A stretch of 64,000 bases of DNA. It comes from Macrostomum lignano (lineage: Eukaryota). Shown here piece by piece: positions 353-56,086 of the stretch; the stretch's first letter is position 1; every line of letters begins with the position of its first letter. The position numbers and the translations under genes are program-made. Location: NCBI GenBank assembly GCA_002269645.1, contig NIVC01002998.1, positions 62,001 through 126,000 on the forward strand. Direction: 5' to 3'. Below the pieces are notes generated by a model. The model did no database searches. It was not told the DNA's origin and saw nothing but the letters and a program-made list of their open reading frames with translations.

Positions 353-5854
<5,502 letters not shown>

Positions 5855-13368: not shown

Positions 13369-14359
<991 letters not shown>

Positions 14360-25299: not shown

Positions 25300-25970
<671 letters not shown>

Positions 25971-31215: not shown

Positions 31216-34200
31216 ATGGAGCCGGACTCTTCTAAAGGAGTCGAAGTGCCGAATGATGGCGATCCGATGGTATCGTTCGAGCCTCAGCCGACGCCGCCGC
31301 CACCGCCATCAACGCAGCCTTCGCCGCCAACACAGCCTCCACTGCCAACGCCACCAAATGACGACGACTGCAAACGTGAACTACTGCTTCAGCTGACGCA
31401 ACAGAAGAAATTTGATGACGCAAAGAAGATTATACAAAGTTTAAAGAACACAGCTGCACCTTTACGTCGAGATCAGCTGCTACGGACAGCTGTTCACTAC
31501 GCCGCGATGGATCCAAGCGGGTTTGAGCTATTGAAGGATCTCACAGAACTGGTTGGCGCAGGCTGCTTGGCAACCCCTGACCGCAATGGAGTGACTCCGT
31601 TTCACTTCGCAGCGCAATATCTGCCTGATAATGCCTGGAATACATTTATTAACCCGCTTGTAACGGAAAGCCATCTTAAGAAGAGAGATAACGCAGGAAA
31701 TACTTGCGGACACTATGCAGTCCGCGAACAGCGTGCCAATGATGGAGTAATACTTTCTATAGTCCATAAGTCGGGGCCGAGATGCCTGGATGTTTCAAAT
31801 GAGATTAAAGAGACGCCTCTTCAGCTTGCGGTAAAAAACTGCACCTCAAAAACAGTTAAAAAGCTGTTGAAAGAGCTCAATCCGAGGTGGCTTCAGGAGG
31901 CAGATGACGAAGGCAACACAGTAGCACATTACGCGGCCATGAACCCGAGAGGCGCGGTACTTAAAGTTGTAAAAAAAGTGGGCGATCCCGTTCTTTTTTG
32001 GTCTAACAATCACAAAGAAACCGTTTTACAAATAGCGCTTCAGTTCTGCTCGATTCCGAAATCGCACTTGCTTCTGAAAAAAGCTGTAGCAAAGGCTGCT
32101 AAATTGCCAGGGTCGAAAGAGTCGAAAAAACTTCGGCAGCAGGATTCGACTGGAAAGACATGCTTACACAGTACAGCGATGCTTAGCGACAGGCAAGAAA
32201 TTCTGCTTCAGGCAGTAGAGTTAGGGAAGCCACTCGGACCCGAATGTCTAGCCTGGAAGAACCAAGCCGGAAGTTCAGTGCTGCACGTTGCACTTGAGCA
32301 TGGCCGCCAGTCCGAACCCGCAAGCACAGAAGTCTTAGTCAAATTGATTTCAAAATCTACAAAAGACGTTCTAGCAAAGGTTGATGCAAACGGTAATACA
32401 TGTCTTCACATAGCCGCTAAGAGGAGAGACAATCATCGATTGTTACGTGAGGCTATCCAGAAGTGCGGAAAAGATTGCATGTTCTGGCCAAACAAAAGAA
32501 ATCAATTGGTAATGTTCTTTGCTATTGGAGTTGTCTCTTCCAAAGAACTAGAAGAGGCATTGAAGAATGACATCCCTTCTGACGATTTCGGCAACACTCT
32601 GTTGCATTACCTCCTTCAAGGCTACAGCAGCGAGTCAGTCTGTGTTGGCTTAACCGATTCTGCAATCGAAAAGCAGTCTACAACTGATATTCTTGAGAAG
32701 ATCGATATCCTTATTGCTTTTGGCGTGGATCCACTTGAGGAGAATATTGCCGCTCAAAACTTTCTACATTGGGCTAAGTTGCCGCAAAATTTGCTTAAGA
32801 AGCTTTTAACAGATTTTTCCGAATCTCATGGGCTTAAGGCCCTGTACGAAAAGCTAGATTGTGGGTCAAATGGACTCCACTTGGTTCACACGTACTCAAG
32901 AAAGTACAATTTGGAAGTTTTATTAGAGCCATTATCGAAACTGTCGGATTTAAAAGAAAATAGACTTTTGAGCTTGGCTGTTTCCAAGGGCGACAACAAG
33001 GGTGCCACCTGTTTTCATTTCGCCTGCGAAGGTGGCCAAACAAGCAGTTTTCGATTCTTATTGAAAAAAGGTCCAAATATTAGCGTCAGCATCAAGACGC
33101 TGACAGATTCCGAACTGTCTTGCATTGACTTTGCTATTGATAGAGGTCACCTCGAGCCGGTAATGAAAGTCTATACAGAATTTGAAGCTAAGGCACTTCA
33201 GAAAAAAGGAATAGGCTCCAAAGCAGCATCAAATGCCGCAAGAATTACTCTCTTGCGCCTCGTTGATCCGATTAAGAAGGCCGTCTCGCTGCCGGACCGG
33301 GTGGCAGCTCAGAAAGCGCTTGCTTCAATAATCGACCAGCTATCCGACGATTCAACTGCCTGTCGGAAGGGCAGAAGAGGCCTGCAAATACTAGAAAGGG
33401 CGATAACGCTCAACTCAACAAAACTATTTCGCAGCGCTCTAAAGATGAACTTTGTTAACGCCACAACGGAGAGACTTTTGCCAGAGTTCTTGCGCTGCCA
33501 GCAGCATCGAAATTTAGAGCTAAGCGTGATGAATTGCCTGTGCATGGGTGACAAAATTGGAAGGCACGGCTGGGTCGATGCTTTTTCTGAGTTGTCTGTC
33601 ATTGACATTACATGTTCACACTCTGAGCACTACGATGAGATTTTGTTGGACTTGGTACTCACTCGGCAATTTGAGCTGATTCCGGCCAGCATTAACCTAC
33701 TCATCAGGCTGGGCCCCGAGATCGACAAGCTACGCTCGCAGGCACGTGGCAAGCACGCTACGCTGCAGGAGTTGTACAGAAAAGTGCAGGAAATCGCTGT
33801 CAATTCTCTTGAAGAGTTGTTCGCTAGCGCTACTCAAAAGCGTCAGCGAGAGCTTCTCTTTGAGTTCCTTCAGGGTCGAATCGAAAGCGCAGAAGGCGTG
33901 TCCGGTCCCAAGTTTCCATTTAGAACTCTAAACAAGAAAATAAGGCATGGCGCCGTAACAGACATGATTGAGGAAGCTGACTGTAACGAGATTTTTGCGA
34001 CAGACTGCATCTACAGCTTGGTGCAGCAGGAGTGGAAGACTGGACGAAGGCCCTGCAGGTGTAGCACATGCTCAGTTTCGAATAGCAAACAAAGTAGTGA
34101 AGACTGCTGCTGCAGATGCACCCGCGAGTTCTATTCACCGCGAGCAAAATTCGGGACTTACTGTACCTTTTTCGCCTTTCTAATTATATACTTTACATGG

Positions 34201-35404
34201 TACACGGTTGACTTCAAAAATAGTTTCGCCCACGTTTCAACTGACATTCCTTTGATATTCTATTGGCTATCCTTCGTTTTCCAAGAAGTTGTCGACTTCC
34301 GCAGACGGAGGAAGCGGCGCAGCTATCTCGTATGCGGCCGCCTCTGCAGATGGCCCACTTATTTTGAGGACTTACTGAACTTTCTAGAATGGCTCGTAAT
34401 TGTTTTTTTACTGGTTGGTCTGATTTTGAAATGGATACTGCTTGCTAATTCGCTACCTTTAACTGCAGCATACCCCTGTCAGATGGTATTTAGCGTCGCT
34501 TTCGGCCTGCTAATGTTTCGGGCAGTGCACTTTTTGAGCCTATCAGCCGTCATTGGTCCTGTAATAACGATGCTATGGAGTCTAGTATTCAATGACTTGC
34601 TGCCATTTCTGGCAATTATCGCCGTCATCATAATCGCTTTCGGAGTGTTTTTCTTCAACCTACTTTTCTCTGTGACTGGAGTGAACACCCAGTCAACTTA
34701 CTACAACAGTCCTTGGTACAGCTGGGACGCCACTGTTGCAGCGATAACTCTACCATTTAACATACTGTTTACAAACTTTGAGAAGCTAGAATTTGGGAAG
34801 ACGTTAACGAATATCACGATTGGAAAATCAGCCCACACGCAAGGAATCGGAGTGTTTGAGAATCTGATGCTGTTCCTTTTCATGGGGCTGGTGAACATTG
34901 TTATGCTGAACCTACTGATCGCGCTCTTCAACCTTCGGGTCAACCGCATGGCTAATGAAGCTCTGGGGATCTGGCGAAGGACGTACTTCGGCATGCTGAA
35001 GGAGTACCAAAACTTGAGTCCGGTTCCGCCACCGCTGTCATTTCTGTGGTACATCTACGATTGCTTTGTGAGAAAATGCTCTTGCAAAAAATGTAAAAAC
35101 TCTGCGGGAGTGGCTCCGAAGAAGAAGGTTTGTTTTGTTTTTTTAATGGCGCGGTGACTCAGTAGGCTAATTGACAATTGTTTTGTCTCTATTTCAGACC
35201 GAAAACTGGTGGCGTGACCCTAAAAAGTATCCCGAGGAGTACATGGATTTTCTGGAGTTCCAAGCTAACCAATTAAGGCGGTTCCGCGCTTCTCTGCTAT
35301 CCAATTCCAACTCCAATAGCCGAGATGATCTCATTGATCAATTGAGTCATCGATTGAAAGTACTGGAAGAACAGACTCAGGCGGTACATGAGAAGCTGAA
35401 GTAA
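31216..35404 (+). CDS. Ankyrin-repeat TRP cation channel (1372 aa); exons 31216-35127, 35198-35404
   Basis: About 12 ankyrin repeats (G.TPFHFAA, GNTVAHYAA, GNTCLHIAA, GATCFHFAC...). Six-TM block with S6 LFMGLVNIVMLNLLIALFN, TRP helix IWRRTYFGMLKEYQNLSPVPPP, C-terminal coiled coil. 70-bp phase-0 intron AAG|GTTTGT...TTTCAG|ACC. Confidence 0.93.
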
Positions 35405-36215
35405 CCAGCTGGTTAAAACAAATATTCCATTATTTTTTCGTTTATGCAAGGCTCTTTAATGACCAATAATTTTCATTCTATAGCATATTTTGAGGAGAAC
35501 TAAGTCTTCAAAGAAAGCTATTACAGTGTAGGCTTCCAATTAAGAGTTTGCAAAGGTTACAAACAAATCCTGTTTTGAATTGTTGGCACAAGAAAAGCGA
35601 CACAAGGAACAAGGAAATATTTCAAAGGCATTGCCAGTGGCGTACGCAGGGGGGGGGGGGGCCGCGGCCCCCCTTCCTCAATCGCCCGCCAAAAAAATTT
35701 GATAGTATTGCTATTCAGGTATTCTTGTTAAAGCAAAATCCATTTACTCAGAAAAACAAAAAATTGCAAGTATTCTAGTATTCTGTTACTCAAGTGTAAT
35801 TGAGATTGAAATGGAAAATACGTTATTCATTGCAAAAAACTTTGATAATCCGCTCTTTTGACATCCGGTTTTTTCACTGTTCGAGCCATTGCTATGGTCA
35901 GTTTGAAAATATTTATATTTTAACAAATGTAGGGTATAAATTTGAACAGTAATTTTGTGATTGAAATATTTTTATTCGGTTCTGTGGACACTTCAAAGAC
36001 TTTTTGTTTATGCACAGATTTACGATTTTTATATATTCGAATGTTTATTCTAGAATTTTAGTATCAACGCTCTATTTATTGTTCGAGCAAATGCTATAAA
36101 ATTAATAAGAAAAATTCTTTTAACATGCAAATATCTTTAAATTATACTCGTAGTTTCACCTCTGGACAGTGTCTCATTAAGACAGTGTCTCTAAGAACAT
36201 TTTATTCTGCGATAT

Positions 36216-36484
36216 CCCCTGCCACCGATTTCCAGTCACTAATCCCCCTGCCACCGATTTCCAGTCACTGATTCCCCTGCCACCGATTTCCTGTCACTAA
36301 TTCCCCTGCCACCGATTTCCTGTCACTAATTCCCCTGCCACCGATTTCCAGTCACTAATTCCCCTGCCACCGATTTCATGTCACTAATTCCCCTGCCACC
36401 GATTTCCTGTCACTAATTCCCCTGCCACCGATTTCCTGTCACTAATTCCCCTGCCACCGATTTCCTGTCACTAATTCCCCTGCT
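36216..36484. repeat. 29-bp minisatellite (CCCCTGCCACCGATTTCCTGTCACTAATT), ~9 copies
   Basis: Directly visible. Confidence 0.93.
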
Positions 36485-36525
36485 AACAATTTCACGTCAC
36501 AAATTTCATGAGCGCTTCTTGTCTG

Positions 36526-37931: not shown

Positions 37932-39768
37932 TTAACCTGTAAATTCTAAATTTGCAGATCGCTCTCGTACTGTATGGACTACTAGCAGTAGGCTGCCAGC
38001 GTTTTTTGTGTGTTCGTCCTCCAAATCTTACGATTATCAATATTTGACATACATGTAGTTTTGCTTATTAATAACATATTTTTAGGTCACATATTGTACT
38101 CTCTGAGGGATTACTTGCTCGCATTAAGATATTTTAGTTTTTGGTCTTCATGATGATGAAGTTGCCAATCATTTTTACAACGGATTTTATAAGTTTTGGC
38201 CCAGAAAGTCTCATGTGATTTTTTAATTTAGTTCTTATTATTCTTCGTTGATATGGAATCAAAGATCATTGTTCTGGTCTCACCAGACAATCACGTCGAC
38301 CTCCGCGGTAGCTGAAATTATTGATCCAGTCAATAATGAGAAGCAACATTGTTTATATTGACTAAGATCGGTAGATGTACTCGAAAAAATATTTGAGTGC
38401 AAGATTACAAACTCAATGATAAAAAACAAACATCGTTCAACAAAGTAATTTAAGCAAGACTATTTAATTAAAAATTCGATACCTGCTTATTTCATTCAAT
38501 CATAGTTTGATTTGTTCTTCCAAAAACAATAAAGCCATCGGCCTACGCGAAAGTCCTTCATCGCTAGAGTTATATTTCCAGTTCGTGATAATCATTTCCC
38601 ATGTCCCACGCACTCAAATCCCAGTTCCTATTTAGGACTTACTTATCACAGCTCTATATCGACCAAGTAATTACCGGAACTCTAATCCTACTCATTTTTT
38701 TCGCACCTATCTTACCATCCTCATCTACTTTCCACTCTTCCTCTCTGTCATTCGCGTGCAGAGTCCCACAGATCTTCCCTCAGCCCTTAGCAACAGCAAT
38801 TTTCCACGAATCCTATTCCCGATCATCCGATAGGCCTCCCAGCGTCCTCGCTTAGTGCTGTGCCATGCTTATATGGAGTAGTTTTCCATAAAAGTATCTG
38901 GCCACTTCAGGCTCTTCCGCGCAGCTCACTTCCCTCATCCTCTCTCTCTCTCTCTCTCTGTTCCTCATTCGCTCTCCCCTCCTACTTAAGCTACCTTCAG
39001 TCTCTGCTTGCGCATGATCCTGCAGCAAAAAAGTGTCTATAAGCCCTTAGGCGCTATTTCTGCTCCCCCCCTCTTAGCCTTCGTCCTCCGGAATATCCTC
39101 CGGTCGGGTCTCCCCATCTCTTCCTCTTGATCGTCCCGGCCCGTCCCCTCTTCACATCGCTCCCAAGCCCTCCATTCTTCAATTTTGCGGCCCTAGCCAG
39201 CGGCTATAAAGTAAGAAAGCGTCCAACAAACCTAATTTACTGCTGGCCCCGTTCAGGAGAGAGAATTAAAAAAAGAGCAGCATATACAACGGCTGCAACC
39301 GCGTCCTCGGCTCTTTTCCAGCAGAGCGCGGAGCCACCTGGACTTTGGCGAGTAAAAAGCTCCGTCAGAGTGTCTAGGTGGATCCAGCAACGGTGAAGCT
39401 GTAACGTTTTAACCTCCCCCTTCCCCAATTCGACTTTTTACCCCCCCCCCTCCCTGCCTGGCCGGTGGGCCATCCAGTTGTGTCCCAGCACGGCATCGAA
39501 GCTTCTCTATTTGTTCCTTTTCTTCCAGACTGAACGGTTGCACGAAATTTAAACCTTTTTTGATTACTGGATGCCCCACACAGCCTATATTTAGAGATTG
39601 CAACATGCCATGTAGCAGCAGTACGTCTAACCTTCGCTTCGCATGTAAACATTGATATATTCATCGCTAACGTACTAAGGTAAGTGTAATCATAATTTTT
39701 TCTAATTGCTAATGGGCTAGTTAGGTTATTAAGTACTGTTTCCTAAAAAAATATGTAGATGACAATGA

Positions 39769-40272
<504 letters not shown>

Positions 40273-40361
40273 GACACTATGACAGACAGTTGACCAAAAG
40301 CTATCAGCTATCAGCTAATCGCGTCAACTCACTTCCAGAACGTCAGCCGTGTATTTTGAGC

Positions 40362-40852: not shown

Positions 40853-41310
40853 CTCTTTACTCACCGTACTCTACTCTCTACTCACTGTACTCTACTCTCT
40901 AATCACTGTACTCTACTCTCTAATCACTGTACTCTACTCTCTAATCACTGTACTCTACTCTCTAATCACTGTACTCTACTCTCTACTCACTGTACTCTAC
41001 TCTCTAATCACTGTACTCTACTCTCTACTCACTGTACTCTACTCTCTAATCACTGTACTCTACTCTCTAATCACTGTACTCTACTCTCTAATCACTGTAC
41101 TCTACTCTCTAATCACTGTACTCTACTCTCTAATCACTGTACTCTACTCTCTAATCACTGTACTCTACTCTCTAATCACTGTACTCTACTCTCTAATCAC
41201 TGTACTCTACTCTCTAATCACTGTACTCTACTCTCTAATCACTGTACTCTACTCTCTAATCACTGTACTCTACTCTCTACTCATTGTACTCTATTTTATA
41301 CTCACTAAAC
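40853..41310. repeat. 21-bp minisatellite (CTACTCTCTAATCACTGTACT), ~21 copies
   Basis: Directly visible; produces the false ITVLYSL tail of ORF 40290-41315. Confidence 0.96.
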
Positions 41311-41796
41311 TCTAATCTCTGCTTTCGATCCAAAGATGAGACGGGATTGAAGGGTTGAGGTCTCTCTGCCCTAGACGCTTACGGAAAGGTTATTAATAGG
41401 CTTTTAGGCCATGCATTGGTTTCCATGCCTTGTTTCTATTCTACTCGTAGAGCATTGTTATAATTGTTATAATGACCAAGGAAGAAGCATTGCCAAAGAA
41501 TGTTATTTCTTCGGTGAAAAGTACCAACTAACAGAATGCAAATCGGAATGAAGGCTAAATGCTGATTACCTTATCAACTGAAGACTTATAAACGTAGACT
41601 TCTGGAAGACTCGACACTGAAGCTTAGGAATATTGGCTATAATGCTTTTAAAATCTTGAAAAAAATACTCTGGTATATTTAGCTTCTCAATCTTCTTACT
41701 AAGAAGTAGCAAGAAAAGAATATAGTTTTTCTCCTTTAGTTTCCTCAAGAAACTATTCAATCTGCATTTTATCTCTTTACTATAATTAGAGATAAA

Positions 41797-42054: not shown

Positions 42055-42480
42055 GTACTGCTCGATTTAAACTAAATTAAGTGATTCCTGTTTTGCGGTT
42101 CATGGCTTAAAAATCATTATGAAGGTAAATAAAAAAGCTAAAGGTAATATTACTCGTAGATCGCGGCTCATTTCCCACGGTGAACTAGTAAAAGTAGGTT
42201 AAGTGTAGGCAGAAGTGTAGCTTCTGGTGTCAAGTGGTTAAAATGAATAAAAAGGTTTCTTGAGAGGCGTCTGAAGAGTCTAAGTGCCACGCATTAAAGG
42301 AAAAGTAAAACTCAATTAAACGGATACTATACTCGTATGGAATCAGCTTTGAATTTTGTTAACAAACGTAATTATTGGTTAGAGGTTACGTTTATAATTA
42401 TAGAAAACGCCTGCTAGAAAAAGAACACAGCAAATTCTATAGAGTCTTGTAAGAAAGTAAACTCTGCAAAACCACAGGAG

Positions 42481-43554
42481 CTACTGACGCTGCACCATGC
42501 ACGCCTCCAGCCAGTCGTCGCGCACCCTCGCTTCGTTCACTTGGCTAATACCATTGCGCAACTCGATAAGATCTACGTCATCCGGCAGTTGGCCAAGTAT
42601 GAAGATGCAAATTCGAGCAAGAGGCCGGTAGATAATTCCATAGTTGTCCTGCTGAAGGAATTCTTGCTGATTAAAGTCGATCCTGGCCACCTTTTGGGGA
42701 GATTCGTCCAGCCGCTGCCAGCCCGGGTTGTCATCCCAGTGCGGGAAGGTGACAAAAAACCAAAACTTGCCTGGCTCCGCATCGTCCAGAGTTTCTAAGA
42801 CTCTCTCGGCAGTGGCGTTCAGCACAGGCTCCACAAAGGGCGGGCCGAGACTCCAGCCGCCCGGATATCCGGACAGGTCGAGGCGGAAGAAGTTTCCCAG
42901 ACTGCCAAACGCGGCGTCAGTGTCATTGAACAGGCTGCAGAACTTGACGCCATCTCGTCCCAGAAGGCGGCAGTTCAGAGGCGACGAGAAGCCCTCATAG
43001 GTGACGTGGCCAACGTCGTACAGAGCGTCGAGTCCCGACACGCACATGCCAGACTCACCGCCGTAGAACTTGCACAGATGAGCGTAGCGAAGGCACATCA
43101 GCGCAGTCGCGTCAGTGCCGTATGTTTGCGCCAGGTAGCGAATTCGAAGACAATTCCGGGTTTGGAAATCACCCACGAGTATATTTCCACTGGTTCCGCT
43201 CTCGGTGTATCGAACAGCAACATCAGGCAGTGGTTCATCCTCGAGATCAGTGCCCAGAAATTCTTCGATACTGTCGAACACCTGGTTGGATATTCTCTTT
43301 GCCGTATCTTCATTCGCGCGTAAATTCTGTTGCAGCATCCTCTCCAGTTCCGTCCTGAGGTTTTCATTAAACGGTTGCTGTGGCAACAACGGATAGGCAG
43401 CTTCTTGATCCGCTGTGTTGAAGAGTTGCACGATTTGCAGAAACCTACCAAACACGTTTAATGCGGCATTCTTGTGCTTATTCTCGGGACCCCATTTAGG
43501 AAGGGCTGTTCGAAAGTCTTGAAAAAGCCTTTCGATAAAATTGTATTGTCGCAT
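42481..43554 (-). CDS. PCIF1/CAPAM-like methyltransferase-domain protein, copy 1 (intronless, no WW domain, 357 aa from the internal Met)
   Basis: LRY...EGFSSPLN...FCSLF.DTD..FGSLGNFF...GGWSLGPPFVE...F..TFPHW matches the PCIF1 catalytic pattern (ECFASPLN...YCSAF.DTD..FGS.G...ANPPF...P.W). The original ATG at 43600 is out of frame. Confidence 0.85.
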   Translation of the reverse strand: MRQYNFIERLFQDFRTALPKWGPENKHKNAALNVFGRFLQIVQLFNTADQEAAYPLLPQQPFNENLRTELERMLQQNLRANEDTAKRISNQVFDSIEEFLGTDLEDEPLPDVAVRYTESGTSGNILVGDFQTRNCLRIRYLAQTYGTDATALMCLRYAHLCKFYGGESGMCVSGLDALYDVGHVTYEGFSSPLNCRLLGRDGVKFCSLFNDTDAAFGSLGNFFRLDLSGYPGGWSLGPPFVEPVLNATAERVLETLDDAEPGKFWFFVTFPHWDDNPGWQRLDESPQKVARIDFNQQEFLQQDNYGIIYRPLARICIFILGQLPDDVDLIELRNGISQVNEARVRDDWLEACMVQRQ

Positions 43555-45505
43555 CTCTTTGGCGATTTTTTTCCGGTTCTATTCCAGCGAATTCGGCCAT
43601 TATTTTCACACGGCTTGATTGTCTCAGTAATCGTTAGGGTAGTTTAGAGTGCAGATATTTGCAGCTCGGTGTTTTTTCAATGGCCTGTATTTATGTCGTT
43701 GCTCTCCAGCCGGTAGAGATTTTCATCGTTTATATTTCCAAGAAATGAAACAAAATCTACGACAATAAAAATTCTCGCTGACGCGAGCGAGGGCAGGGAA
43801 ATGTACAGTTTTGCAACTGAGGCAAAATTCCAGGAAATGGCTACTGTACATAACTCAGATCCAAATAACTGGATGTATAGTCTCTTCGGCCCTGAAAATT
43901 GTTTTTTTTAACTAGAAACAATAGCCCAAGTGGCGCGCGCCGCCACTCGCTCATTGTAGGCAGCGCTAGAGCAGCTTATGTCCAGACAAAAAGTGCGCAC
44001 AGTTATGTTCTTACCCCAAAAAGTCTGACCCCCGGCCTCAGTTCGTCTTTATGCAAAAGAGAGAGGCATACGAAGCTGCCGTGAAATGCGCAAGTACCTG
44101 CCGCAAAGTTTTGCTAGATTAATTTTCAAAATATATGATGAGACCATCTTCAATTCGAGCACAAGAACGATGACTTAACTGGACAAGCTTTTTATCTTCG
44201 AGTACTATTAGTAGCATTTAAAGCTCGACGCTTCGAATGATGGCAACCAAAAACTTGATCAAAGTGATATTTTCTAGAATTTTGCAACAAAAAGTAACTG
44301 GTCATTTTGAACATTGATTTTAAACTAGGATGACTGTAGGAAATTATTTTGAAGACAATTTCACTTCTAGGATTATAAACTCAAAGCTGAAGTTTCTAAT
44401 CGGTGTCATATCTTAACTGCAACAGGTACGAACAAGATTAATAATTAGATTTGCAGGAGGGTTGTGGGCACCCTTGCGTAGCATCTTCCCTGACATAGCT
44501 CTACAAACAGCACTGAGACAATTCTGCCTCAGTCTTTTTGTCCTTTTGTTTTCAGTCTTTTCTGCCTCACTCCGGAGCACATTAGCACGCTTCAAACATT
44601 AGCACATTAGCACGCTTCCTGACTTTCAAATCGTCAGGAATGTAACACTATGTGCCTTGTAGGTTGGCATACATGGGTGTAAATCGCATCGGCTAATTTT
44701 CGGGAACAAGCCCTAGATGAATCAAACCAGAGGTACGCTCGTAGTGGTGCGAGAGTCAAATTAGTTTACTACTGGCTTACCATCTGGAGACAATGGCGCA
44801 ACATTTGTGAGTGCGACTCTATGACTTGCTGTAGGTTTTTGTTTTTTGTCGTAGTCCAGATTTCAGGGTGACAGATCAGGACGTGCTCAACTTAATTCAA
44901 TCAAAATCAATTGATGAAATCTATGGCATCGTCTTCGCCCTCCCAGTATGATCAGCAGCATCTCGAACGGAGATAGATTAGAGACTAAGACGCTGAAAAG
45001 ATGCAACAGATTACCATGTCTCTTTCTACTTTAAAAAAGGTCTTTACGCTCAAACCAAGCCACTGGTAACTTTTGAGCATTCTACTTTTGCCAAACAACT
45101 TTCCAAACATGATATTTAATAGCAATTAGTAGCAAAACGTCCAAAAGCACAGTTCTAGACTTTTTATGCGTAAAATAGTTGCTGAGGATCTATCGAAATA
45201 TAGAGGGTATTCAGAGAAATTCAGTACATCAGAGAAATTGTCCTTGGGTATCTGGTGCCACATGTTGAAGGCCAAGACACTCTGCTTGGGCCACGACACT
45301 CTGCTTGGGCCAAGACACTCTGCTTGCTCCCGATGAGGCATCTGCGGTGTCAGCATGGGAAGCGCAATCTGCTAATTTCAACATTTCTACGGTGCTAAAA
45401 ACACCAACTCCAAGACTTAAAAAAAAAGTCCAAGCAGACTTTTCGACGAACATATCGGAAGCAGCACCGACGCCCACAGAGCCGACTCCTCCGGTGCTCC
45501 CTTCA

Positions 45506-46829
45506 ATGAGGCTTGGGCCTGGCTACATCCACAATATGCAGCAGCAGATCCAAGGCCTTGTTGATTTTCCGTTGGAGAGCCCACATGGTCTTCTTTATGT
45601 GCAGCTGAGCATTCACCGAGAGTTTGCGATGAGAAGCAGCGCACTTGAGGCCAAAGTCGATGCGCTAACGAGTGAGATAACCGGATATCGCTCGGAGATC
45701 AAGCGGCTGTCATCTATTATTGATCCTAATAGTGAATCTGTCCAGGTGACAACTTTCGAAGCGATAGACTCGTGGGAAGACTATATCCGCTTCATTGAAA
45801 ACCCCGAGGTTTTGCACGAGAATTCGGTGAGTGTATAATACGCTTTTTGTAAAAAGTGTTTGTTTTGTAAAAATATGTAAAAAGATTTACATCTTTTGAG
45901 ATTGAGGCTGAGCAAATTGATGCATTAACTACTGTGTATATATACATAAAATACAAAAACTGAAGTAAAGTTTAAATATCCCAGCTAATTAAAAATCGCT
46001 TTGAACTCTTTCCTTTGACAGAGAAATCATTTGCGACTCTTCGCGCGTGCCAAGTGGGAAGATTCGGTACGCGACATGCTCGACTCCGCCCCAAGGCTGA
46101 AGATGCAGGCCGTGGTCAACTACAAGGGAGTCGACATACAGCAGCGAGCCACACAGGCTGGTGTACCTACCCATTTAAGTGACGATGATCTTGGACTTAA
46201 AAAAGTATTTTTGCCATTTGTTCAAGGTTAGTGCTATTTTTCACTATAACATTTATGAGCAGATCTTTAGCTCCTATGATTCAATACAAGTTAGACCGCA
46301 TGCACTGCTTAAAAAGACTTCAAGAATAAGCCAAATTATATCTCCAATCTACTACTACCCGACCATGAGTAGCAATGCAAAAATGTTTTTTCCAAGAAAT
46401 TTTAATTAAGATCTAATTGTTGCTGTTCATTTATCTTTAACAGAAGCGGTCACGAAGATCTTCGGCAAAATCGGAGATGACAAAAGGCCTCCGATCGGAG
46501 CGGTCGCAAACGCTTGCCGCGATCACCTCAAGCGCGGCGGCGATCGTTTCACACAGCGAATTCATCGCAAGGCCAGTGAAAAACCTCGGTCTACTAATAA
46601 ACCTCAGCGGCTGGTTTGCAAGTATCGACCTCAGCAACCCCAGGAGCTTTCAAAGACTGCAGCCGCTTCTGGAGCAGCTTGTGCCGTGCAGCAAAGACAG
46701 ACCCAGAAGAAAGCTGCCGCCTCTTCAAAGGCGGCTTCACGCAAGCGCCGAAGATCTAGCGACTCTGATTCCTCTGATGCTAGTTCTATCGTGGACGTGT
46801 ACTCGAATTCTAGCGATTTTGAAATCTAG
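45506..46829 (+). CDS. DUF4806/BEN-like domain protein; exons <=45506-45826, 46022-46226, 46444-46829
   Basis: GT-AG introns (phase 0, phase 1) join a coiled coil to DSVRDML...VVNYKG...LGLKK.F..FVQEAV.....I..V...LKRGGDR, the DUF4806-type pattern, followed by a basic/Ser-rich tail. The 5' end is uncertain. Confidence 0.6.
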
Positions 46830-47708
46830 TAAAGTATGAACACTTGACGTCATCTCATTGTAGTTAACAATTATTTTTGTGTAATTTTATCGAGTTAAAT
46901 TAGCTAAACAGTGAGTTTAATGTATGATTATGAGTGCATGCAAATTTGAAGGATCTCGTAAACCAGTGCTAACGGATACGATTATCAATAGTCGCTGAAC
47001 TCAGAATTGTCTATTCAGCTTGAGTGCTCACATTATGTATTTTCTATTTTGTTTAAACTTCCTTAGTTACTGGTAGTTAGAAACAAAATTATTTTGTTTA
47101 ATTTCTTGCTAATGCAAATTTTCCTTACGCTTATGTTAGTTTTTTTCAGAAATTCAATGATTAATTACTAGCATATTTTAAACATAAAGTTTTTTATAAA
47201 TATTAATAAACCTTTCGTACTCTGAAAAGTATTTGTTTGCTCATGTACTCGCTCATGGGCTAAGCTCATGTACTCGTAGTTACTAAAGAAGTCAGCTGAT
47301 GCAGACACATGTCGTCGACGTGCTGATGGCTTGGCAAGGCGCATAGAGGCTTATTAAATATTCTAGCGCTCATGAAAAAAATCCGACCTTCTGGCAGAAT
47401 CGTTCAATATATCGACGGTCCTGAGGGCTGCTGACTTGATTCTGCGTTGCTCCAGTAACGACGCAGCGAAAACGCGTTCACATAAAAACATTTAATTTTT
47501 AGCTCAACTCGAGATCATAGCACTATTTCAGCTTTCAGCATCTTTCTCTTTGCTTTTATTTGATAATCGAGCCAACCGGTGCTGGAAAATTAAATCAGTT
47601 TGAGGAGGACGAGAGGTGAGCGGGTGGGGTTGCGCTGAGCTTGCACAGCAAAATGCCTACTGAGCACTAGAGCTTAACCCAGCCCAAATGAACAAGCTCT
47701 AGGCCAGT

Positions 47709-47990
47709 GTGGTTGACACTCGAACAACCCCGGAATCTGGAGTGAGCTTCCACAGCCAGCCTCTCCAAGACGCTGCTCTTGAGAAATGGAAGCGAGAAAA
47801 CCCGAGAAGACAGTTTAAACGGGCGAAGTTCTCCAAGATTTGCTCTCGCGATTTTTATTTCCCCATGACTTTATTAAAGCATCAGCGGATACCAACGTCA
47901 CACGCAAAGAGAAGCGAGTCGCTATCAAGGAGGTGTCTGAAGCTTGAAGCGGTTCCATTCATTTTCCCAAATGCTCCCATCTACTTATGA
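47709..47990 (+). pseudogene. Degenerate THAP zinc-finger domain (P-element-type transposase N-terminus remnant)
   Basis: GVSFH..P....LEKW......F...K.SKICS.DF.....LKLEAVP.IFPN.P.YL follows THAP spacing. The N-terminal CxxxxC is lost and the ligand His is replaced by Asp. Confidence 0.7.
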
Positions 47991-48399
47991 TCTCACAAGA
48001 AGGCACAGCGAGCAACCTCAGTGACCTCAGGAGAAAGAGCTGGAATTGGAGTCTTTCTGGAAGCCGACTTCAATGCTGAGACGAACCTTCAGGAGATTTA
48101 GCTGCAAGCTGGAGCAGGAAGCAGCCAAGCCAGCTGGATTCCAGACGGCTATCCAAGGCAAGCTCTGCATCTATATGCTACAGACAGCTTCTGAATTCGT
48201 GACCTTGTTTTTTCTTGGGCTTAATTCGTTACAGAGGCATGGCCATAGAATGCTATTTTCGGGTGAAAAGTGCCAATGAACAGGAGGAAAACCGACATTC
48301 ATACGAGCGTATTGGCTGAAGGCTGATTCTCTTATCAACTGGACTTATAAACGGAGGGCTTCTGGAAGACGTGACATTGAAGCTTAAGAATGTTGACTT

Positions 48400-48837
48400 T
48401 CATACTTTGAAAATCTTGAAAAAAAACTCTATCTGAGCGTGTGAATCAGTAAAAAATGACACTTGTATGGGGAATTGTCGTGCGGAATTGTCTACTAAGA
48501 AGTAGCAAGAACAGAATATAAACTTCTTTTTCTGTATATTTTTCAATAAAATTTGAAGTCTGCATTCTTCAAACGTATGCAAGAACTCAGAAATCGATGC
48601 TGGGATTTCTTGGTCTTGAATCTCTTTACTTGAATTGAAAATAAATCGCCAACACTGACCGGTCATTTCAGTTCGACAAGCTCTTATGCGCATCATGAGC
48701 AAGGCAAGGTCGCAGTCAAACTCGAAGTTGTCGTTGGAGTTTCGGCAGACTTTTAATTTTGCTACCTCAACAATTCGGCAACTGATAACTGATTGATGCA
48801 ATGCAGATTGGCTTAATATATCTATATTTAAAAACAC
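48400..48837 (-). CDS. Unknown ORF downstream of PCIF1-like copy 2
   Basis: 145-codon frame; conserved at protein level with 41797-42054, including synonymous changes. Confidence 0.45.
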   Translation of the reverse strand: MFLNIDILSQSALHQSVISCRIVEVAKLKVCRNSNDNFEFDCDLALLMMRIRACRTEMTGQCWRFIFNSSKEIQDQEIPASISEFLHTFEECRLQILLKNIQKKKFIFCSCYFLVDNSARQFPIQVSFFTDSHAQIEFFFKIFKV

Positions 48838-49283
48838 CGAGTAACCCTTTGGGCTTTAAATGAAAATATTTTTTGTTAATTTGCACTTGTGTAACATACT
48901 GCTCGATTTAAACTGAACTGAGTGAAAAAATTACTATGAAAGTAAATAAACAAAGCTTATTACGTAATATAGATCGCGCCTCATTACATACGGTAAACTA
49001 GAAAGTGTAAGCTAAAGTGAACGCATGCCTGACTTTTAAAGAAAAAGTTGTTTTATTCAACAGGTTTTTAAGCTACGCTCATAGCTTCCGGTATTACATG
49101 TGAGAGGTTAAACTGAATAAAAAATTATTTCTGTGGTGTCTGAAGATTTTTCAAATGGCTGCTGTTAGCTAGTTGTCAGAGGTTTTTAACTATAGGAAAC
49201 TCCTGGTAGAAATATATTATATAACACAGAAAATTATATAGAGTAGAGTCTTTTAAGAAGTTAACTCTGCCAAACCACAGGAA

Positions 49284-50357
49284 CTACTGAGGCTGCACCC
49301 TGCACGCCTCCAGCCAGTCGTCGTGCACCTTCGCTTCGTCCAATTGGCTAATACGATTGCGCAACTCGATTAAATCTACGTCGTCAGGCAGTTGGCCGAG
49401 TATGAAGATGCAAATTCGAGCAAGAGGCCGGTAGATAATTCCATAGTTGTCCTGCTGAAGGAATTCTTGCTGATCAAAGTCGATCCTGGCCACCTTTTGG
49501 GTAGATTCATCCAGCCTCTGCCAGCCGGTGTTGTCATCCCAGTGCGGGAAGGTGACAAAAAACCAAAACTTGCCCGGCTCCGCATCGTCCAGAGTTTCTA
49601 AGACTCTCTCGGCAGTGGCGTTTAGAACGGGCTCCACAAAGGGCGGGCCGAGACTCCAGCCACCCGGATATCCAGACAGGTCGAGGCGGAAGAAGTTTCC
49701 CAGACTGCCAAACGCGGCGTCAGTGTCCTTGAACAGGCTGCAGAACTTGACGCCATCTCGTCCCAGAAGGCGGCAGTTCAGAGGCGACGAGAAGCCCTCA
49801 TAGGTGACGTGGCCAACGTCGTACAGAGCGTCGAGTCCCGACACGCACATGCCAGACTCACCGCCGTAGAACTTGCACAGATGAGCGTAGCGGAGGCACA
49901 TCAGCGCAGTCGCGTCAGTTCCGTATGTTTGCGCCAGGTAGCGAATTCGAATACAGTTCCGGGTTTGGAAATCACCCACGAGTATATTTCCACTGGTTCC
50001 GCTCTCGGTGTATCGAACAGCAACATCAGGCAGCGGTTCACCCTCGAGATCAATGCCTAGAAATTCTTCGATACTGTCGAACACCTGGTTGGATATTCTC
50101 TTTGCCGTATCTTCATTCGCGCGTAAATTCTGTTGCAGCATCCTCTCCAGTTCCGTCCTGAGGTTTTCATTAAACGGTTGCTGTGGCAACAACGGATAGG
50201 CAGCTTCTTGATCCGCTGTGTTGAAGAGTTGCACGATTTGCAGAAACCTACCAAACACGTTTAATGCGGCATTCTTGTGCTTATTCTCGGGACCCCATTT
50301 AGGAAGGGCTGTTCGAAAGTCTTGAAAAAGCCTTTCGATAAAATTGTATTGTCGCAT
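49284..50357 (-). CDS. PCIF1/CAPAM-like methyltransferase-domain protein, copy 2 (chimera of copies 1 and 3)
   Basis: Same motifs. The N-terminal part equals copy 1 and the remainder equals copy 3. Confidence 0.85.
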   Translation of the reverse strand: MRQYNFIERLFQDFRTALPKWGPENKHKNAALNVFGRFLQIVQLFNTADQEAAYPLLPQQPFNENLRTELERMLQQNLRANEDTAKRISNQVFDSIEEFLGIDLEGEPLPDVAVRYTESGTSGNILVGDFQTRNCIRIRYLAQTYGTDATALMCLRYAHLCKFYGGESGMCVSGLDALYDVGHVTYEGFSSPLNCRLLGRDGVKFCSLFKDTDAAFGSLGNFFRLDLSGYPGGWSLGPPFVEPVLNATAERVLETLDDAEPGKFWFFVTFPHWDDNTGWQRLDESTQKVARIDFDQQEFLQQDNYGIIYRPLARICIFILGQLPDDVDLIELRNRISQLDEAKVHDDWLEACRVQPQ

Positions 50358-52308
50358 CTCTTTGGCGATTTTTTTCCGGTTCTATTCCAGCGAATTCGGC
50401 CATTATTTTCACACGGCTTGATTGTCTCAGTAATCGTTAGGGTAGTTTAGAGTGCAGATATTTGCAGCTCGGTGTTTTTTCAATGGCCTGTATTTATGTC
50501 GTTGCTCTCCAGCCGGTAGAGATTTTCATCGTTTATATTTCCAAGAAATGAAACAAAATCTACGACAATAAAAATTCTCGCTGACGCGAGCGAGGGCAGG
50601 GAAATGTACAGTTTTGCAACTGAGGCAAAATTCCAGGAAATGGCTACTGTACATAACTCAGATCCAAATAACTGGATGTATAGTCTCTTCGGCCCTGAAA
50701 ATTGTTTTTTTTAACTAGAAACAATAGCCCAAGTGGCGCGCGCCGCCACTCGCTCATTGTAGGCAGCGCTAGAGCAGCTTATGTCCAGACAAAAAGTGCG
50801 CACAGTTATGTTCTTACCCCAAAAAGTCTGACCCCCGGCCTCAGTTCGTCTTTATGCAAAAGAGAGAGGCATACGAAGCTGCCGTGAAATGCGCAAGTAC
50901 CTGCCGCAAAGTTTTGCTAGATTAATTTTCAAAATATATGATGAGACCATCTTCAATTCGAGCACAAGAACGATGACTTAACTGGACAAGCTTTTTATCT
51001 TCGAGTACTATTAGTAGCATTTAAAGCTCGACGCTTCGAATGATGGCAACCAAAAACTTGATCAAAGTGATATTTTCTAGAATTTTGCAACAAAAAGTAA
51101 CTGGTCATTTTGAACATTGATTTTAAACTAGGATGACTGTAGGAAATTATTTTGAAGACAATTTCACTTCTAGGATTATAAACTCAAAGCTGAAGTTTCT
51201 AATCGGTGTCATATCTTAACTGCAACAGGTACGAACAAGATTAATAATTAGATTTGCAGGAGGGTTGTGGGCACCCTTGCGTAGCATCTTCCCTGACATA
51301 GCTCTACAAACAGCACTGAGACAATTCTGCCTCAGTCTTTTTGTCCTTTTGTTTTCAGTCTTTTCTGCCTCACTCCGGAGCACATTAGCACGCTTCAAAC
51401 ATTAGCACATTAGCACGCTTCCTGACTTTCAAATCGTCAGGAATGTAACACTATGTGCCTTGTAGGTTGGCATACATGGGTGTAAATCGCATCGGCTAAT
51501 TTTCGGGAACAAGCCCTAGATGAATCAAACCAGAGGTACGCTCGTAGTGGTGCGAGAGTCAAATTAGTTTACTACTGGCTTACCATCTGGAGACAATGGC
51601 GCAACATTTGTGAGTGCGACTCTATGACTTGCTGTAGGTTTTTGTTTTTTGTCGTAGTCCAGATTTCAGGGTGACAGATCAGGACGTGCTCAACTTAATT
51701 CAATCAAAATCAATTGATGAAATCTATGGCATCGTCTTCGCCCTCCCAGTATGATCAGCAGCATCTCGAACGGAGATAGATTAGAGACTAAGACGCTGAA
51801 AAGATGCAACAGATTACCATGTCTCTTTCTACTTTAAAAAAGGTCTTTACGCTCAAACCAAGCCACTGGTAACTTTTGAGCATTCTACTTTTGCCAAACA
51901 ACTTTCCAAACATGATATTTAATAGCAATTAGTAGCAAAACGTCCAAAAGCACAGTTCTAGACTTTTTATGCGTAAAATAGTTGCTGAGGATCTATCGAA
52001 ATATAGAGGGTATTCAGAGAAATTCAGTACATCAGAGAAATTGTCCTTGGGTATCTGGTGCCACATGTTGAAGGCCAAGACACTCTGCTTGGGCCACGAC
52101 ACTCTGCTTGGGCCAAGACACTCTGCTTGCTCCCGATGAGGCATCTGCGGTGTCAGCATGGGAAGCGCAATCTGCTAATTTCAACATTTCTACGGTGCTA
52201 AAAACACCAACTCCAAGACTTAAAAAAAAAGTCCAAGCAGACTTTTCGACGAACATATCGGAAGCAGCACCGACGCCCACAGAGCCGACTCCTCCGGTGC
52301 TCCCTTCA

Positions 52309-53632
52309 ATGAGGCTTGGGCCTGGCTACATCCACAATATGCAGCAGCAGATCCAAGGCCTTGTTGATTTTCCGTTGGAGAGCCCACATGGTCTTCTTTA
52401 TGTGCAGCTGAGCATTCACCGAGAGTTTGCGATGAGAAGCAGCGCACTTGAGGCCAAAGTCGATGCGCTAACGAGTGAGATAACCGGATATCGCTCGGAG
52501 ATCAAGCGGCTGTCATCTATTATTGATCCTAATAGTGAATCTGTCCAGGTGACAACTTTCGAAGCGATAGACTCGTGGGAAGACTATATCCGCTTCATTG
52601 AAAACCCCGAGGTTTTGCACGAGAATTCGGTGAGTGTATAATACGCTTTTTGTAAAAAGTGTTTGTTTTGTAAAAATATGTAAAAAGATTTACATCTTTT
52701 GAGATTGAGGCTGAGCAAATTGATGCATTAACTACTGTGTATATATACATAAAATACAAAAACTGAAGTAAAGTTTAAATATCCCAGCTAATTAAAAATC
52801 GCTTTGAACTCTTTCCTTTGACAGAGAAATCATTTGCGACTCTTCGCGCGTGCCAAGTGGGAAGATTCGGTACGCGACATGCTCGACTCCGCCCCAAGGC
52901 TGAAGATGCAGGCCGTGGTCAACTACAAGGGAGTCGACATACAGCAGCGAGCCACACAGGCTGGTGTACCTACCCATTTAAGTGACGATGATCTTGGACT
53001 TAAAAAAGTATTTTTGCCATTTGTTCAAGGTTAGTGCTATTTTTCACTATAACATTTATGAGCAGATCTTTAGCTCCTATGATTCAATACAAGTTAGACC
53101 GCATGCACTGCTTAAAAAGACTTCAAGAATAAGCCAAATTATATCTCCAATCTACTACTACCCGACCATGAGTAGCAATGCAAAAATGTTTTTTCCAAGA
53201 AATTTTAATTAAGATCTAATTGTTGCTGTTCATTTATCTTTAACAGAAGCGGTCACGAAGATCTTCGGCAAAATCGGAGATGACAAAAGGCCTCCGATCG
53301 GAGCGGTCGCAAACGCTTGCCGCGATCACCTCAAGCGCGGCGGCGATCGTTTCACACAGCGAATTCATCGCAAGGCCAGTGAAAAACCTCGGTCTACTAA
53401 TAAACCTCAGCGGCTGGTTTGCAAGTATCGACCTCAGCAACCCCAGGAGCTTTCAAAGACTGCAGCCGCTTCTGGAGCAGCTTGTGCCGTGCAGCAAAGA
53501 CAGACCCAGAAGAAAGCTGCCGCCTCTTCAAAGGCGGCTTCACGCAAGCGCCGAAGATCTAGCGACTCTGATTCCTCTGATGCTAGTTCTATCGTGGACG
53601 TGTACTCGAATTCTAGCGATTTTGAAATCTAG
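52309..53632 (+). CDS. DUF4806/BEN-like domain protein, duplicate copy
   Basis: Same exons as 45506-46829 at +6803. Confidence 0.6.
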
Positions 53633-54511
53633 TAAAGTATGAACACTTGACGTCATCTCATTGTAGTTAACAATTATTTTTGTGTAATTTTATCGAGTTA
53701 AATTAGCTAAACAGTGAGTTTAATGTATGATTATGAGTGCATGCAAATTTGAAGGATCTCGTAAACCAGTGCTAACGGATACGATTATCAATAGTCGCTG
53801 AACTCAGAATTGTCTATTCAGCTTGAGTGCTCACATTATGTATTTTCTATTTTGTTTAAACTTCCTTAGTTACTGGTAGTTAGAAACAAAATTATTTTGT
53901 TTAATTTCTTGCTAATGCAAATTTTCCTTACGCTTATGTTAGTTTTTTTCAGAAATTCAATGATTAATTACTAGCATATTTTAAACATAAAGTTTTTTAT
54001 AAATATTAATAAACCTTTCGTACTCTGAAAAGTATTTGTTTGCTCATGTACTCGCTCATGGGCTAAGCTCATGTACTCGTAGTTACTAAAGAAGTCAGCT
54101 GATGCAGACACATGTCGTCGACGTGCTGATGGCTTGGCAAGGCGCATAGAGGCTTATTAAATATTCTAGCGCTCATGAAAAAAATCCGACCTTCTGGCAG
54201 AATCGTTCAATATATCGACGGTCCTGAGGGCTGCTGACTTGATTCTGCGTTGCTCCAGTAACGACGCAGCGAAAACGCGTTCACATAAAAACATTTAATT
54301 TTTAGCTCAACTCGAGATCATAGCACTATTTCAGCTTTCAGCATCTTTCTCTTTGCTTTTATTTGATAATCGAGCCAACCGGTGCTGGAAAATTAAATCA
54401 GTTTGAGGAGGACGAGAGGTGAGCGGGTGGGGTTGCGCTGAGCTTGCACAGCAAAATGCCTACTGAGCACTAGAGCTTAACCCAGCCCAAATGAACAAGC
54501 TCTAGGCCAGT

Positions 54512-54793
54512 GTGGTTGACACTCGAACAACCCCGGAATCTGGAGTGAGCTTCCACAGCCAGCCTCTCCAAGACGCTGCTCTTGAGAAATGGAAGCGAGA
54601 AAACCCGAGAAGACAGTTTAAACGGGCGAAGTTCTCCAAGATTTGCTCTCGCGATTTTTATTTCCCCATGACTTTATTAAAGCATCAGCGGATACCAACG
54701 TCACACGCAAAGAGAAGCGAGTCGCTATCAAGGAGGTGTCTGAAGCTTGAAGCGGTTCCATTCATTTTCCCAAATGCTCCCATCTACTTATGA
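54512..54793 (+). pseudogene. Degenerate THAP domain, duplicate copy
   Basis: Identical translation to 47709-47990. Confidence 0.7.
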
Positions 54794-55202
54794 TCTCACA
54801 AGAAGGCACAGCGAGCAACCTCAGTGACCTCAGGAGAAAGAGCTGGAATTGGAGTCTTTCTGGAAGCCGACTTCAATGCTGAGACGAACCTTCAGGAGAT
54901 TTAGCTGCAAGCTGGAGCAGGAAGCAGCCAAGCCAGCTGGATTCCAGACGGCTATCCAAGGCAAGCTCTGCATCTATATGCTACAGACAGCTTCTGAATT
55001 CGTGACCTTGTTTTTTCTTGGGCTTAATTCGTTACAGAGGCATGGCCATAGAATGCTATTTTCGGGTGAAAAGTGCCAATGAACAGGAGGAAAACCGACA
55101 TTCATACGAGCGTATTGGCTGAAGGCTGATTCTCTTATCAACTGGACTTATAAACGGAGGGCTTCTGGAAGACGTGACATTGAAGCTTAAGAATGTTGAC
55201 TT

Positions 55203-55640: not shown

Positions 55641-56086
55641 CGAGTAACCCTTTGGGCTTTAAATGAAAATATTTTTTGTTAATTTGCACTTGTGTAACAT
55701 ACTGCTCGATTTAAACTGAACTGAGTGAAAAAATTACTATGAAAGTAAATAAACAAAGCTTATTACGTAATATAGATCGCGCCTCATTACATACGGTAAA
55801 CTAGAAAGTGTAAGCTAAAGTGAACGCATGCCTGACTTTTAAAGAAAAAGTTGTTTTATTCAACAGGTTTTTAAGCTACGCTCATAGCTTCCGGTATTAC
55901 ATGTGAGAGGTTAAACTGAATAAAAAATTATTTCTGTGGTGTCTGAAGATTTTTCAAATGGCTGCTGTTAGCTAGTTGTCAGAGGTTTTTAACTATAGGA
56001 AACTCCTGGTAGAAATATATTATATAACACAGAAAATTATATAGAGTAGAGTCTTTTAAGAAGTTAACTCTGCCAAACCACAGGAA

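Follow-up and report, generated by a model that had tools for sequence, protein, structure and literature searches.

We analysed a 64,000-nucleotide (nt) stretch of the Macrostomum lignano genome (assembly GCA_002269645.1, contig NIVC01002998.1, positions 62,001-126,000, forward strand; hereafter the window), which holds three copies of a gene related to the RNA cap methyltransferase PCIF1. The catalytic Asn-Pro-Pro-Phe/Tyr of the PCIF1/CAPAM family (motif IV) is absent from them, and all copies carry Gly-Pro-Pro-Phe (GPPF) instead. In window coordinates, the genes and the array containing them are arranged as follows:

42440-57364, no strand: tandem array with a 6,803-bp period, from self-blast
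42481-43554, minus strand: PCIF1-like copy 1, single exon, 357 amino acids (aa) from an internal Met; parental copy
42835-42846, minus strand: GPPF codons GGC CCG CCC TTT of copy 1, at the motif IV position
43555-43600, minus strand: frameshifted 15-codon N-terminal extension of copy 1, with its ATG (43600-43598) kept and an A7 run at 43572-43566
43555-49283, no strand: spacer A, 100% identical to spacer B (50358-56086)
49284-50357, minus strand: PCIF1-like copy 2, single exon, 357 aa; mismatch-free chimera of copies 1 and 3
49638-49649, minus strand: GPPF codons of copy 2, from pattern match and translation
56087-57205, minus strand: PCIF1-like copy 3, single exon, 372 aa, N-terminal extension intact; second parental copy
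56441-56452, minus strand: GPPF codons of copy 3 (Gly252), from pattern match and translation

The original prediction, made from the letters of the window, had placed GPPF in all three copies and described the motifs near the S-adenosylmethionine (SAM) site, EGFSSPLN and DTD..FGS, as kept. Both statements hold. The plus strand at 42835-42846 reads AAAGGGCGGGCC, so that the minus strand encodes G-P-P-F with GGC CCG CCC TTT, and the same codons encode the motif within GGWSLGPPFVEPV in every copy. All three translations contain GGWSLGPPFVEPVLNA and retain EGFSSPLN and F(N/K)DTDAAFGSLGNFF. The pattern GGNCCNCCNTTY matches four times in the window against 0.46 matches expected by chance, and three of these matches (42835, 49638 and 56441) are exactly 6,803 bp apart, each inside a PCIF1-like open reading frame (ORF). 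The fourth, at 8304-8315, was discarded as an unrelated chance match; tblastn across the 64-kb window returned the three gene copies and no other. The copy 1 protein is 98% identical to M. lignano BOX15_Mlig015920g3, and all three ORFs match Pfam PF12237 (PCIF1_WW) at ~89-90 bits (88.8, 90.5) against a cut-off of 31.1, with an E-value of 4.3e-25 for copy 1, which places them in the family by its profile. Older M. lignano gene models of this locus (P0022 and P0028; UniProt A0A1I8J898 and related entries) are chimeric or frameshifted: P0022 is fused to ~900 unrelated residues, and EEFWALISRMNHCLMLLFDTPRAEPVE in an older model appears to be an out-of-frame version of EEFLGTDLEDEPLPDVAVRYTESG. Database entries for Mlig015920 therefore need to be used with caution.

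The three copies do not amount to three independent observations. Copy 2 is identical to copy 1 over nt 1-343 of the coding sequence (CDS) and to copy 3 from nt 267 onwards, with zero private differences, placing the crossover between CDS nt 267 and 343. The two spacers have 0 mismatches in 5,729 bp. This extra, perfect 6,803-bp unit sits atop an older duplication of ~1.3 kb, comprising the gene and short flanks, whose two members (42440-43762 and 56047-57364) are 91.7% identical. As read from the sequence, copy 2 is the exact product expected of unequal crossover between copies 1 and 3. A second M. lignano contig, NIVC01003467.1 (Mlig_3_7; L001 3121-11160), matches this region at ~98% identity and holds the two parental copies alone, both 372 aa long and both with GGC CCG CCC TTT; the extra 6,803-bp unit is absent. 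That unit thus stems either from unequal crossover in the very recent past or from a fault of the assembly, and the lack of private differences in copy 2, together with the identical spacers, reduces the GPPF observations in the window from three to two. We also considered the 6.8-kb unit as a mobile element or viral insert and rejected this for the present locus: no Pfam-recognisable ORF was found in the spacer, and those that Pfam recognises elsewhere in the window (ankyrin-repeat, WSC and ion-channel-like) are not viral-looking.

Copies 1 and 2 share one defect, confined to the 15-codon N-terminal extension. Each has an A7 run (in copy 2 at 50375-50369, with the ATG at 50403-50401) where L001 and P0001 have A6; this puts the extension out of frame and leaves Met16 as the start. 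In P0001 and in both L001 copies the extension reads through, giving 372 aa. The A7 run may have arisen as a homopolymer error of long-read sequencing, or it may be a true polymorphism.

Sequence and structure comparisons agree in placing GPPF at motif IV, as the original prediction had assumed, and structural alignment does not place the motif elsewhere. Using phmmer against PDB sequences, GPPF aligned column for column with NPPF of human PCIF1 (6irv, E = 1.5e-10) and also with NPPF of zebrafish PCIF1 (6irx), with no gaps around the motif and with the upstream PCIF1 blocks ECFASPLNC and FPDTDGYFGS in register. An AlphaFold model of copy 3 built on an 84-sequence family alignment reached a predicted local distance difference test score (pLDDT) of 90.3 and a predicted template modelling score (pTM) of 0.90; a 23-sequence version reached a pLDDT of only 67. 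In the predicted model, GPPF occupies residues 252-255, after a strand (247-251) and before a helix (257-273). In class-I methyltransferases motif IV follows strand 4. When we searched the PDB with Foldseek, six PCIF1/CAPAM entries (6irw, 6irv, 6irx, 6iry, 6is0 and 6irz) were the only significant matches, with E-values of 2e-13 to 7e-11 and query TM-scores (TMq) of 0.49-0.52. The predicted fold consists of a Rossmann methyltransferase core and a helical domain resembling the CAPAM crystal structures; the global root-mean-square deviation from CAPAM is large because the helical domain is smaller.

All 14 core or SAM-proximal residues that we checked are kept in the flatworm protein. It departs from the family at strongly conserved columns only by N252G, A205S, S210C and a change in loop 181-186, the counterpart of the last part of the PCIF1 active-site loop (human Q490-P494). 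S210C and the altered loop are also present in the sister gene Mlig030305, which has NPPF, leaving N252G, besides A205S, as the sole departure unique to the Mlig015920 lineage. The sister's Asn codon is AAT, while copies 1-3 have GGC, which implies two non-synonymous changes with Asp or Ser as the intermediate. Either residue is permitted at position 1 of the (D/N/S)PP(Y/F/W) enzymes. On this comparison, Asn to Gly at motif IV is a real, lineage-specific change in a genome that also encodes NPPF paralogues.

Over the 1,071 nt compared, 57 differences separate copies 1 and 3, of which 26 are synonymous and 31 non-synonymous. The many synonymous changes noted in the original prediction are therefore present; the two copies, which it called older and diverged, are shallowly diverged, with a synonymous divergence (dS) of ~0.12. 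Over the whole CDS, dS is 0.117 and the non-synonymous divergence (dN) 0.038, for a dN/dS of 0.33 (binomial p = 9e-5 against neutrality). Constraint is uneven along the protein: dN/dS is 0.43 in codons 1-150 (dS 0.131, dN 0.056), 0.11 in the methyltransferase core (codons 151-300; dS 0.103, dN 0.012) and 0.53 in the C-terminal tail (dS 0.117, dN 0.062). A ratio near 1, which the prediction had named as evidence against itself, is thus not what we find, either overall or in the core. Four cross-paralogue pairs including L001 gave a dN/dS of 0.33-0.43; in recent pairs, allelic or homeologous, it was ~0.58, based on very few changes. The gene has been under purifying selection since a time when Gly was already present. 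Neither mark of a processed or decaying pseudogene (a disrupted ORF or a dN/dS near 1) was found: five ORFs on two contigs are intact, with only the N-terminal extension of copies 1 and 2 disrupted. A relative-rate comparison detected no acceleration of the GPPF lineage relative to its NPPF sister.

An exhaustive HMMER search returned 1,643 homologues. The closest are other M. lignano genes, Mlig000263, Mlig030305 (P0023, 40% identity) and A0A1I8HAP9 (P0025), all with NPPF. M. lignano has at least four paralogue groups of a short PCIF1-like family, and in a neighbour-joining tree Mlig015920 pairs with Mlig030305 at 89% bootstrap on a branch no longer than that of its sister; both genes are intronless. 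Mlig000263 (L031 3001-9499, NIVC01002568.1) is annotated as 1,283 aa and contains three PCIF1-like units in one continuous frame, each with a ~1.2-1.3 kb intron after FVTFPR; units 1 and 2 appear identical by reading. The next homologues are many metagenome proteins of ~310-370 aa. The flatworm protein shares with this short subfamily its length and the blocks EGF(A/S)SPLN, FCSLFxDTDxxFGSxGxFF, GxWx(V/L)xPPF and PxWxD, and neighbour-joining separates the subfamily from the long PCIF1 proteins at 99% bootstrap.

A scan of IMG/VR gave 25 loci. Most of them lie on contigs of 10-950 kb from giant-virus metagenomes; Asn-Pro-Pro-Tyr/Phe is present in at least 22/25 and Gly in 0/25. On the L002 contig, genes for Rpb5, RNase III, Skp1, OTU and SMC-like proteins are packed on both strands. 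Giant-virus-like neighbourhoods were seen at L002 and L029, and neighbours across L002-L027 and L029 include Rpb5, RNase III, Skp1, OTU and protein kinase genes. The M. lignano paralogues form a sister group of the short PCIF1-like proteins from giant-virus metagenomes.

Canonical animal PCIF1 proteins carry an N-terminal WW domain (PF00397). A Pfam scan at E ≤ 1 gave no match to it in any of the copies, and the ORF starts ~150 residues ahead of the core, the same place at which the short-family homologues start. Judged by its sequence, Mlig015920 is a paralogue within an expanded, WW-less, giant-virus-related short subfamily and not a canonical PCIF1 orthologue. The label PCIF1-like stands through PF12237, and other M. 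lignano paralogues keep NPPF.

How unusual is Gly at this position? We tallied motifs from alignments guided by hidden Markov models, since a plain regular-expression tally would miss 58/169 proteins. Among the 169 proteins nearest to the flatworm gene, position 1 of motif IV is Asn in ~88%; Gly occurs in the Mlig015920 lineage, in P0121 (a giant-virus-like homologue with GPPF on an AT-rich giant-virus-like contig) and in four dinoflagellate proteins with GPPY. Among relatives of the dinoflagellate proteins, GPPY is found in 44/116, with carriers in Tripos, Durusdinium, Polarella, Cladocopium, Breviolum, Platyproteum, Polyplicarium and Paratrimastix. The GPPY(T) group as catalogued here comprises P0015-P0018, P0176-P0212, P0218, P0223, P0239 and P0271, and includes unnamed metagenome and Joint Genome Institute (JGI) sequences. 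In the set of 116, the motif of canonical animal proteins is NPPF or NPPY, apart from a few insect proteins with HPPY, NPPIH or NPPM. The Effrenium voratum protein P0262 is of the NPPF type, and both types are therefore present within the Symbiodiniaceae sampled.

A pooled alignment of ~300 domains contained 237 Asn-type, 42 Gly-type and 19 other domains, with GPPY in 41/42 of the Gly-type (the flatworm query row not counted). Domains with Gly at position 1 keep the Pro-Pro-aromatic triplet in 100% (42/42) and the 14 core residues at 96%, against 95% and 97% for those with Asn; the corresponding values for domains with any other residue are 37% and 88%. Two-domain PCIF1-like proteins (P0100, P0123, P0148 and P0161) have degenerate motif IV in both domains (VPPY/FPPF, APSY/HPPY, VPPN/FPPN and IPPH/HIPY), the pattern expected of true decayed pseudo-enzymes. 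The flatworm Gly grouped with any other Gly lineage at 0% bootstrap, and Gly arose independently at least three times; no compensating residue common to the three Gly lineages was found in the alignment comparison. The survey of motif IV that the original prediction had proposed thus gives a divided answer: Gly is rare near the flatworm gene and is fixed, as GPPY, in a large protist group. The prediction had taken GPPF being common among active homologues as evidence against it, and the fixed GPPY group together with P0121, all of them putative enzymes, goes part of the way there. In the literature library searched, no publication had GPPY and NPPY together with methyltransferase, and a search on PCIF1 in alveolates gave nothing relevant.

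PCIF1 is, to our knowledge, the only known writer of cap-adjacent N6,2'-O-dimethyladenosine (m6Am). For its motif IV, the preprint of Boulias et al. predicts that Asn, through its side chain, and the prolines after it prime the target N6 amine, and that the aromatic residue stacks against the base. That mutation of this Asn inactivates PCIF1, as the prediction had stated, is borne out by the human single mutant N553A (PMC9178792) and by the double mutants APPA and SPPG, all inactive. Point mutations in NPPF lower PCIF1 activity (PMC6318281), and mutation of N184 inactivates METTL16 (PMC8287941). PCIF1 alone suffices for methylation in vitro. Drosophila Pcif1, which has NPPH, is described as catalytically dead, with no m6Am detected in flies, and as still binding the phosphorylated C-terminal domain (CTD). 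Mlig015920 has the essential catalytic residue of a methyltransferase substituted, as in pseudo-methyltransferases; by sequence, however, its cofactor pocket does not look degenerate (14/14 residues kept), unlike that of typical decayed pseudo-enzymes. Our literature search found no publication on both Macrostomum and PCIF1, and Mlig015920, Mlig030305 and Mlig000263 are not named in the supplements of the M. lignano papers searched.

The protein retains its predicted fold, its SAM-proximal motifs and its Pro-Pro-Phe loop, all under purifying selection; by analogy with PCIF1, the Pro-Pro-Phe loop would be the base-stacking part of the catalytic loop. Our preferred reading, held tentatively and with a little less than even confidence, is that the Mlig015920 copies are a selected paralogue that probably still binds SAM and RNA but in which catalysis is impaired. 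After the split from NPPF-bearing Mlig030305, the motif IV Asn (AAT) would have changed to Gly (GGC) in the two non-synonymous steps described above, before the local 1.3-kb gene duplication, and the later crossover or assembly artefact would have supplied chimeric copy 2. The protein would still bind SAM plus an RNA 5' end or adenine, and the missing Asn side chain, for which the literature predicts a hydrogen bond to the target N6 amine, would abolish or strongly lower methyl transfer to N6 of adenine. Since removal of this side chain was inactivating in the mutants tested, lost or reduced N6-adenine methylation is the most likely state. The paralogue may then have been retained for a non-catalytic or weakly catalytic role in binding, competition or partnering, with catalysis supplied by the NPPF paralogues Mlig030305, Mlig000263 and A0A1I8HAP9. 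A more specific role as a cap-binding decoy or dominant negative, as the original prediction proposed, has no direct support. Of that prediction's overall interpretation, the motif IV assignment, the kept core and purifying selection survive; the independent copies number two, not three, and the gene is not a canonical PCIF1.

Several observations weigh against this preferred reading. Gly-type proteins do not resemble decaying pseudo-enzymes, with Pro-Pro-aromatic intact in 42/42 and the core at 96%, and GPPY is fixed across a deep alveolate/metamonad group, which means that the pocket as a whole can stay functional over long periods with Gly in place, and catalysis possibly with it. With only two copies and a dS of ~0.12, the unchanged Gly codon says nothing about selection at Gly itself. 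As PCIF1 alone is sufficient in vitro, a METTL14-like partner role would lack a structural basis. The literature search found nothing on expression, SAM binding or activity of Mlig015920.

The main rival, which we consider less likely, is that Mlig015920 still works as a methyltransferase, its variant motif IV giving it altered chemistry or another substrate, with Gly252 opening or loosening the catalytic loop. A backbone carbonyl or water could, for example, replace the Asn side chain, room could be made for an N6-methylated adenine, or another acceptor atom or base could be used. The fully kept and selected SAM motifs and PPF would be expected under such a scheme, as would the retention of Pro-Pro-aromatic in 42/42 Gly-type domains against 37% of the other non-Asn variants, the conservation of GPPY in dinoflagellates, Platyproteum, Polyplicarium and Paratrimastix down to ~30% identity, and the at least three origins of Gly. 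Loop 181-186 is also remodelled, in Mlig015920 and Mlig030305 as well as in the GPPY group. Against these stand the side-chain removals at position 1 that abolish activity in PCIF1 (N553A) and METTL16 (N184), and the lack of a compensating residue common to the three Gly lineages. A wider form of the idea, that GPP(F/Y) is a recurrent functional class of the PCIF1 family with changed chemistry or substrate, evolved independently in flatworm, giant-virus-like and alveolate/metamonad lineages, strikes us as slightly more doubtful still. We know of no characterised amino-methyltransferase with Gly at position 1 of motif IV, which also counts against altered chemistry.

The copies could instead be redundant young duplicates drifting to loss, with Asn to Gly neutral or slightly deleterious and no function of their own. 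PMC10733133 describes M. lignano as neopolyploid, the family has at least four paralogue groups there, copies 1 and 2 have lost the reading frame of the N-terminal extension, and dN/dS values of 0.33-0.43 are only moderate, reaching ~0.58, from very few changes, in the recent allelic or homeologous pairs. Nevertheless, five ORFs on two contigs remain intact over 357 codons, the core dN/dS of 0.11 was measured after Gly arose, 14/14 core residues have survived ~60% divergence from the sister paralogue, and the NPPF sister has a branch at least as long; we regard such drift as improbable. It is more improbable by far that sequencing or assembly errors produced the Gly codon or the array of three copies. 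Such an origin would fit the 100% identity of the extra 6,803-bp unit, its absence from NIVC01003467.1 and the A6/A7 difference, which is typical of long-read errors. However, a change from AAY to GGC needs two substitutions, and GGC is present in five gene copies on two independently assembled contigs. The 57 other differences between copies 1 and 3 in 1,071 nt mean that these are not collapsed reads. An artefact could account for the copy number only, not for the motif.

The catalytic Asn of PCIF1 has been treated as indispensable, yet it is absent from a flatworm paralogue and from the GPPY group, which keep the other active-site features. For the flatworm gene alone our claim is modest: a lineage-specific substitution in one paralogue of an expanded subfamily. 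The GPPY group, spanning dinoflagellates, apicomplexan relatives and Paratrimastix, is large and apparently undescribed. If these proteins are inactive, they would be natural, selected PCIF1 pseudo-enzymes, usable for studying methylation-independent roles in M. lignano, where RNA interference can be used. Activity, on the other hand, would mean extending the (D/N/S)PP(F/Y/W) rule for amino-methyltransferases. Transgenesis is also available in this animal (PMC10733133).

Elsewhere in the window, the following features were recorded:

21376-22413, plus strand: ORF with a WSC domain (Pfam)
31216-35157, plus strand: uninterrupted ankyrin-repeat ORF of 1,313 aa (Pfam)
63182-63916, minus strand: weak ion-transport-domain fragment (Pfam)
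633-890, 2700-4095, 13369-14357, 15230-17040, 19480-20337: micro-/minisatellite stretches
23090-23477, 25301-25968, 36215-36505, 39768-40276, 40853-41320: further micro-/minisatellite stretches

None of these neighbouring ORFs is viral-looking, which suggests a normal stretch of host chromosome. Micro- and minisatellites are abundant across the window, among them CTA x86, a 24-mer x58, GACA x247 and a 28-mer x64, along with 21/35/49-mers, a 33-mer, a 29-mer and a 21-mer; GACA (written AGAC) recurs at 25.3 and 39.8 kb. Many of the long listed ORFs in the satellite stretches are repeat artefacts.

We compared Mlig015920 with known systems. METTL14 (EPPL) likewise has a substituted motif IV and an active N6-adenine methyltransferase as its paralogue, and it is kept for a structural or RNA-binding role. 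It differs in belonging to the MT-A70 family and in being an obligate heterodimer with METTL3, while no partner is known for the flatworm protein; METTL14 also lacks the aromatic residue of motif IV and a functional SAM pocket. Drosophila Pcif1 is a parallel as a natural PCIF1-family member retained in the genome with a substituted NPPF, and offers a precedent for methyltransferase-independent roles. Its change is at position 4 (Phe to His, NPPH), whereas that of Mlig015920 is at position 1; the fly protein also keeps the WW domain, binds Ser5-phosphorylated CTD and is the single orthologue, not one of several paralogues.

Human and zebrafish PCIF1 (CAPAM, PDB 6IRV-6IS0) share PF12237 with the flatworm protein and are its only significant structural match (Foldseek E 2e-13, TMq ~0.5). 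The motifs correspond one to one (E-x-F-(A/S)-SPLN, DTD-x2-FGS-x-G, xPPF and P-x-W), and in both a helical N-terminal region precedes the Rossmann core. Unlike PCIF1, the flatworm protein is ~360 aa long (vs ~700), has no WW domain and a much smaller helical domain, is ~16% identical over the structural alignment, has Gly at the equivalent of Asn553 and a remodelled end of the active-site loop (human Q490-P494), and belongs to the separate short clade (99% bootstrap). The GPPY-type protist proteins have the same Asn to Gly change in an otherwise unaltered active site, with both the remaining motif IV residues and the SAM motifs kept, and they too occur alongside Asn-type paralogues, at least in the Symbiodiniaceae sampled (Effrenium voratum P0262). 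However, they are of the long form (~400-870 aa), with Tyr at position 4 followed by a conserved Thr, are ~23% identical to the flatworm protein, and are of independent origin (0% bootstrap for grouping). The giant-virus short proteins (L002-L027) and the other M. lignano paralogues match Mlig015920 in length, architecture and conserved blocks at 25-44% identity over near full length, with the sister gene Mlig030305 (89% bootstrap) sharing its single exon as well. The difference lies in motif IV: the three M. lignano paralogue groups have NPPF and the viral proteins Asn-Pro-Pro in at least 22/25, where Mlig015920 has GPPF.

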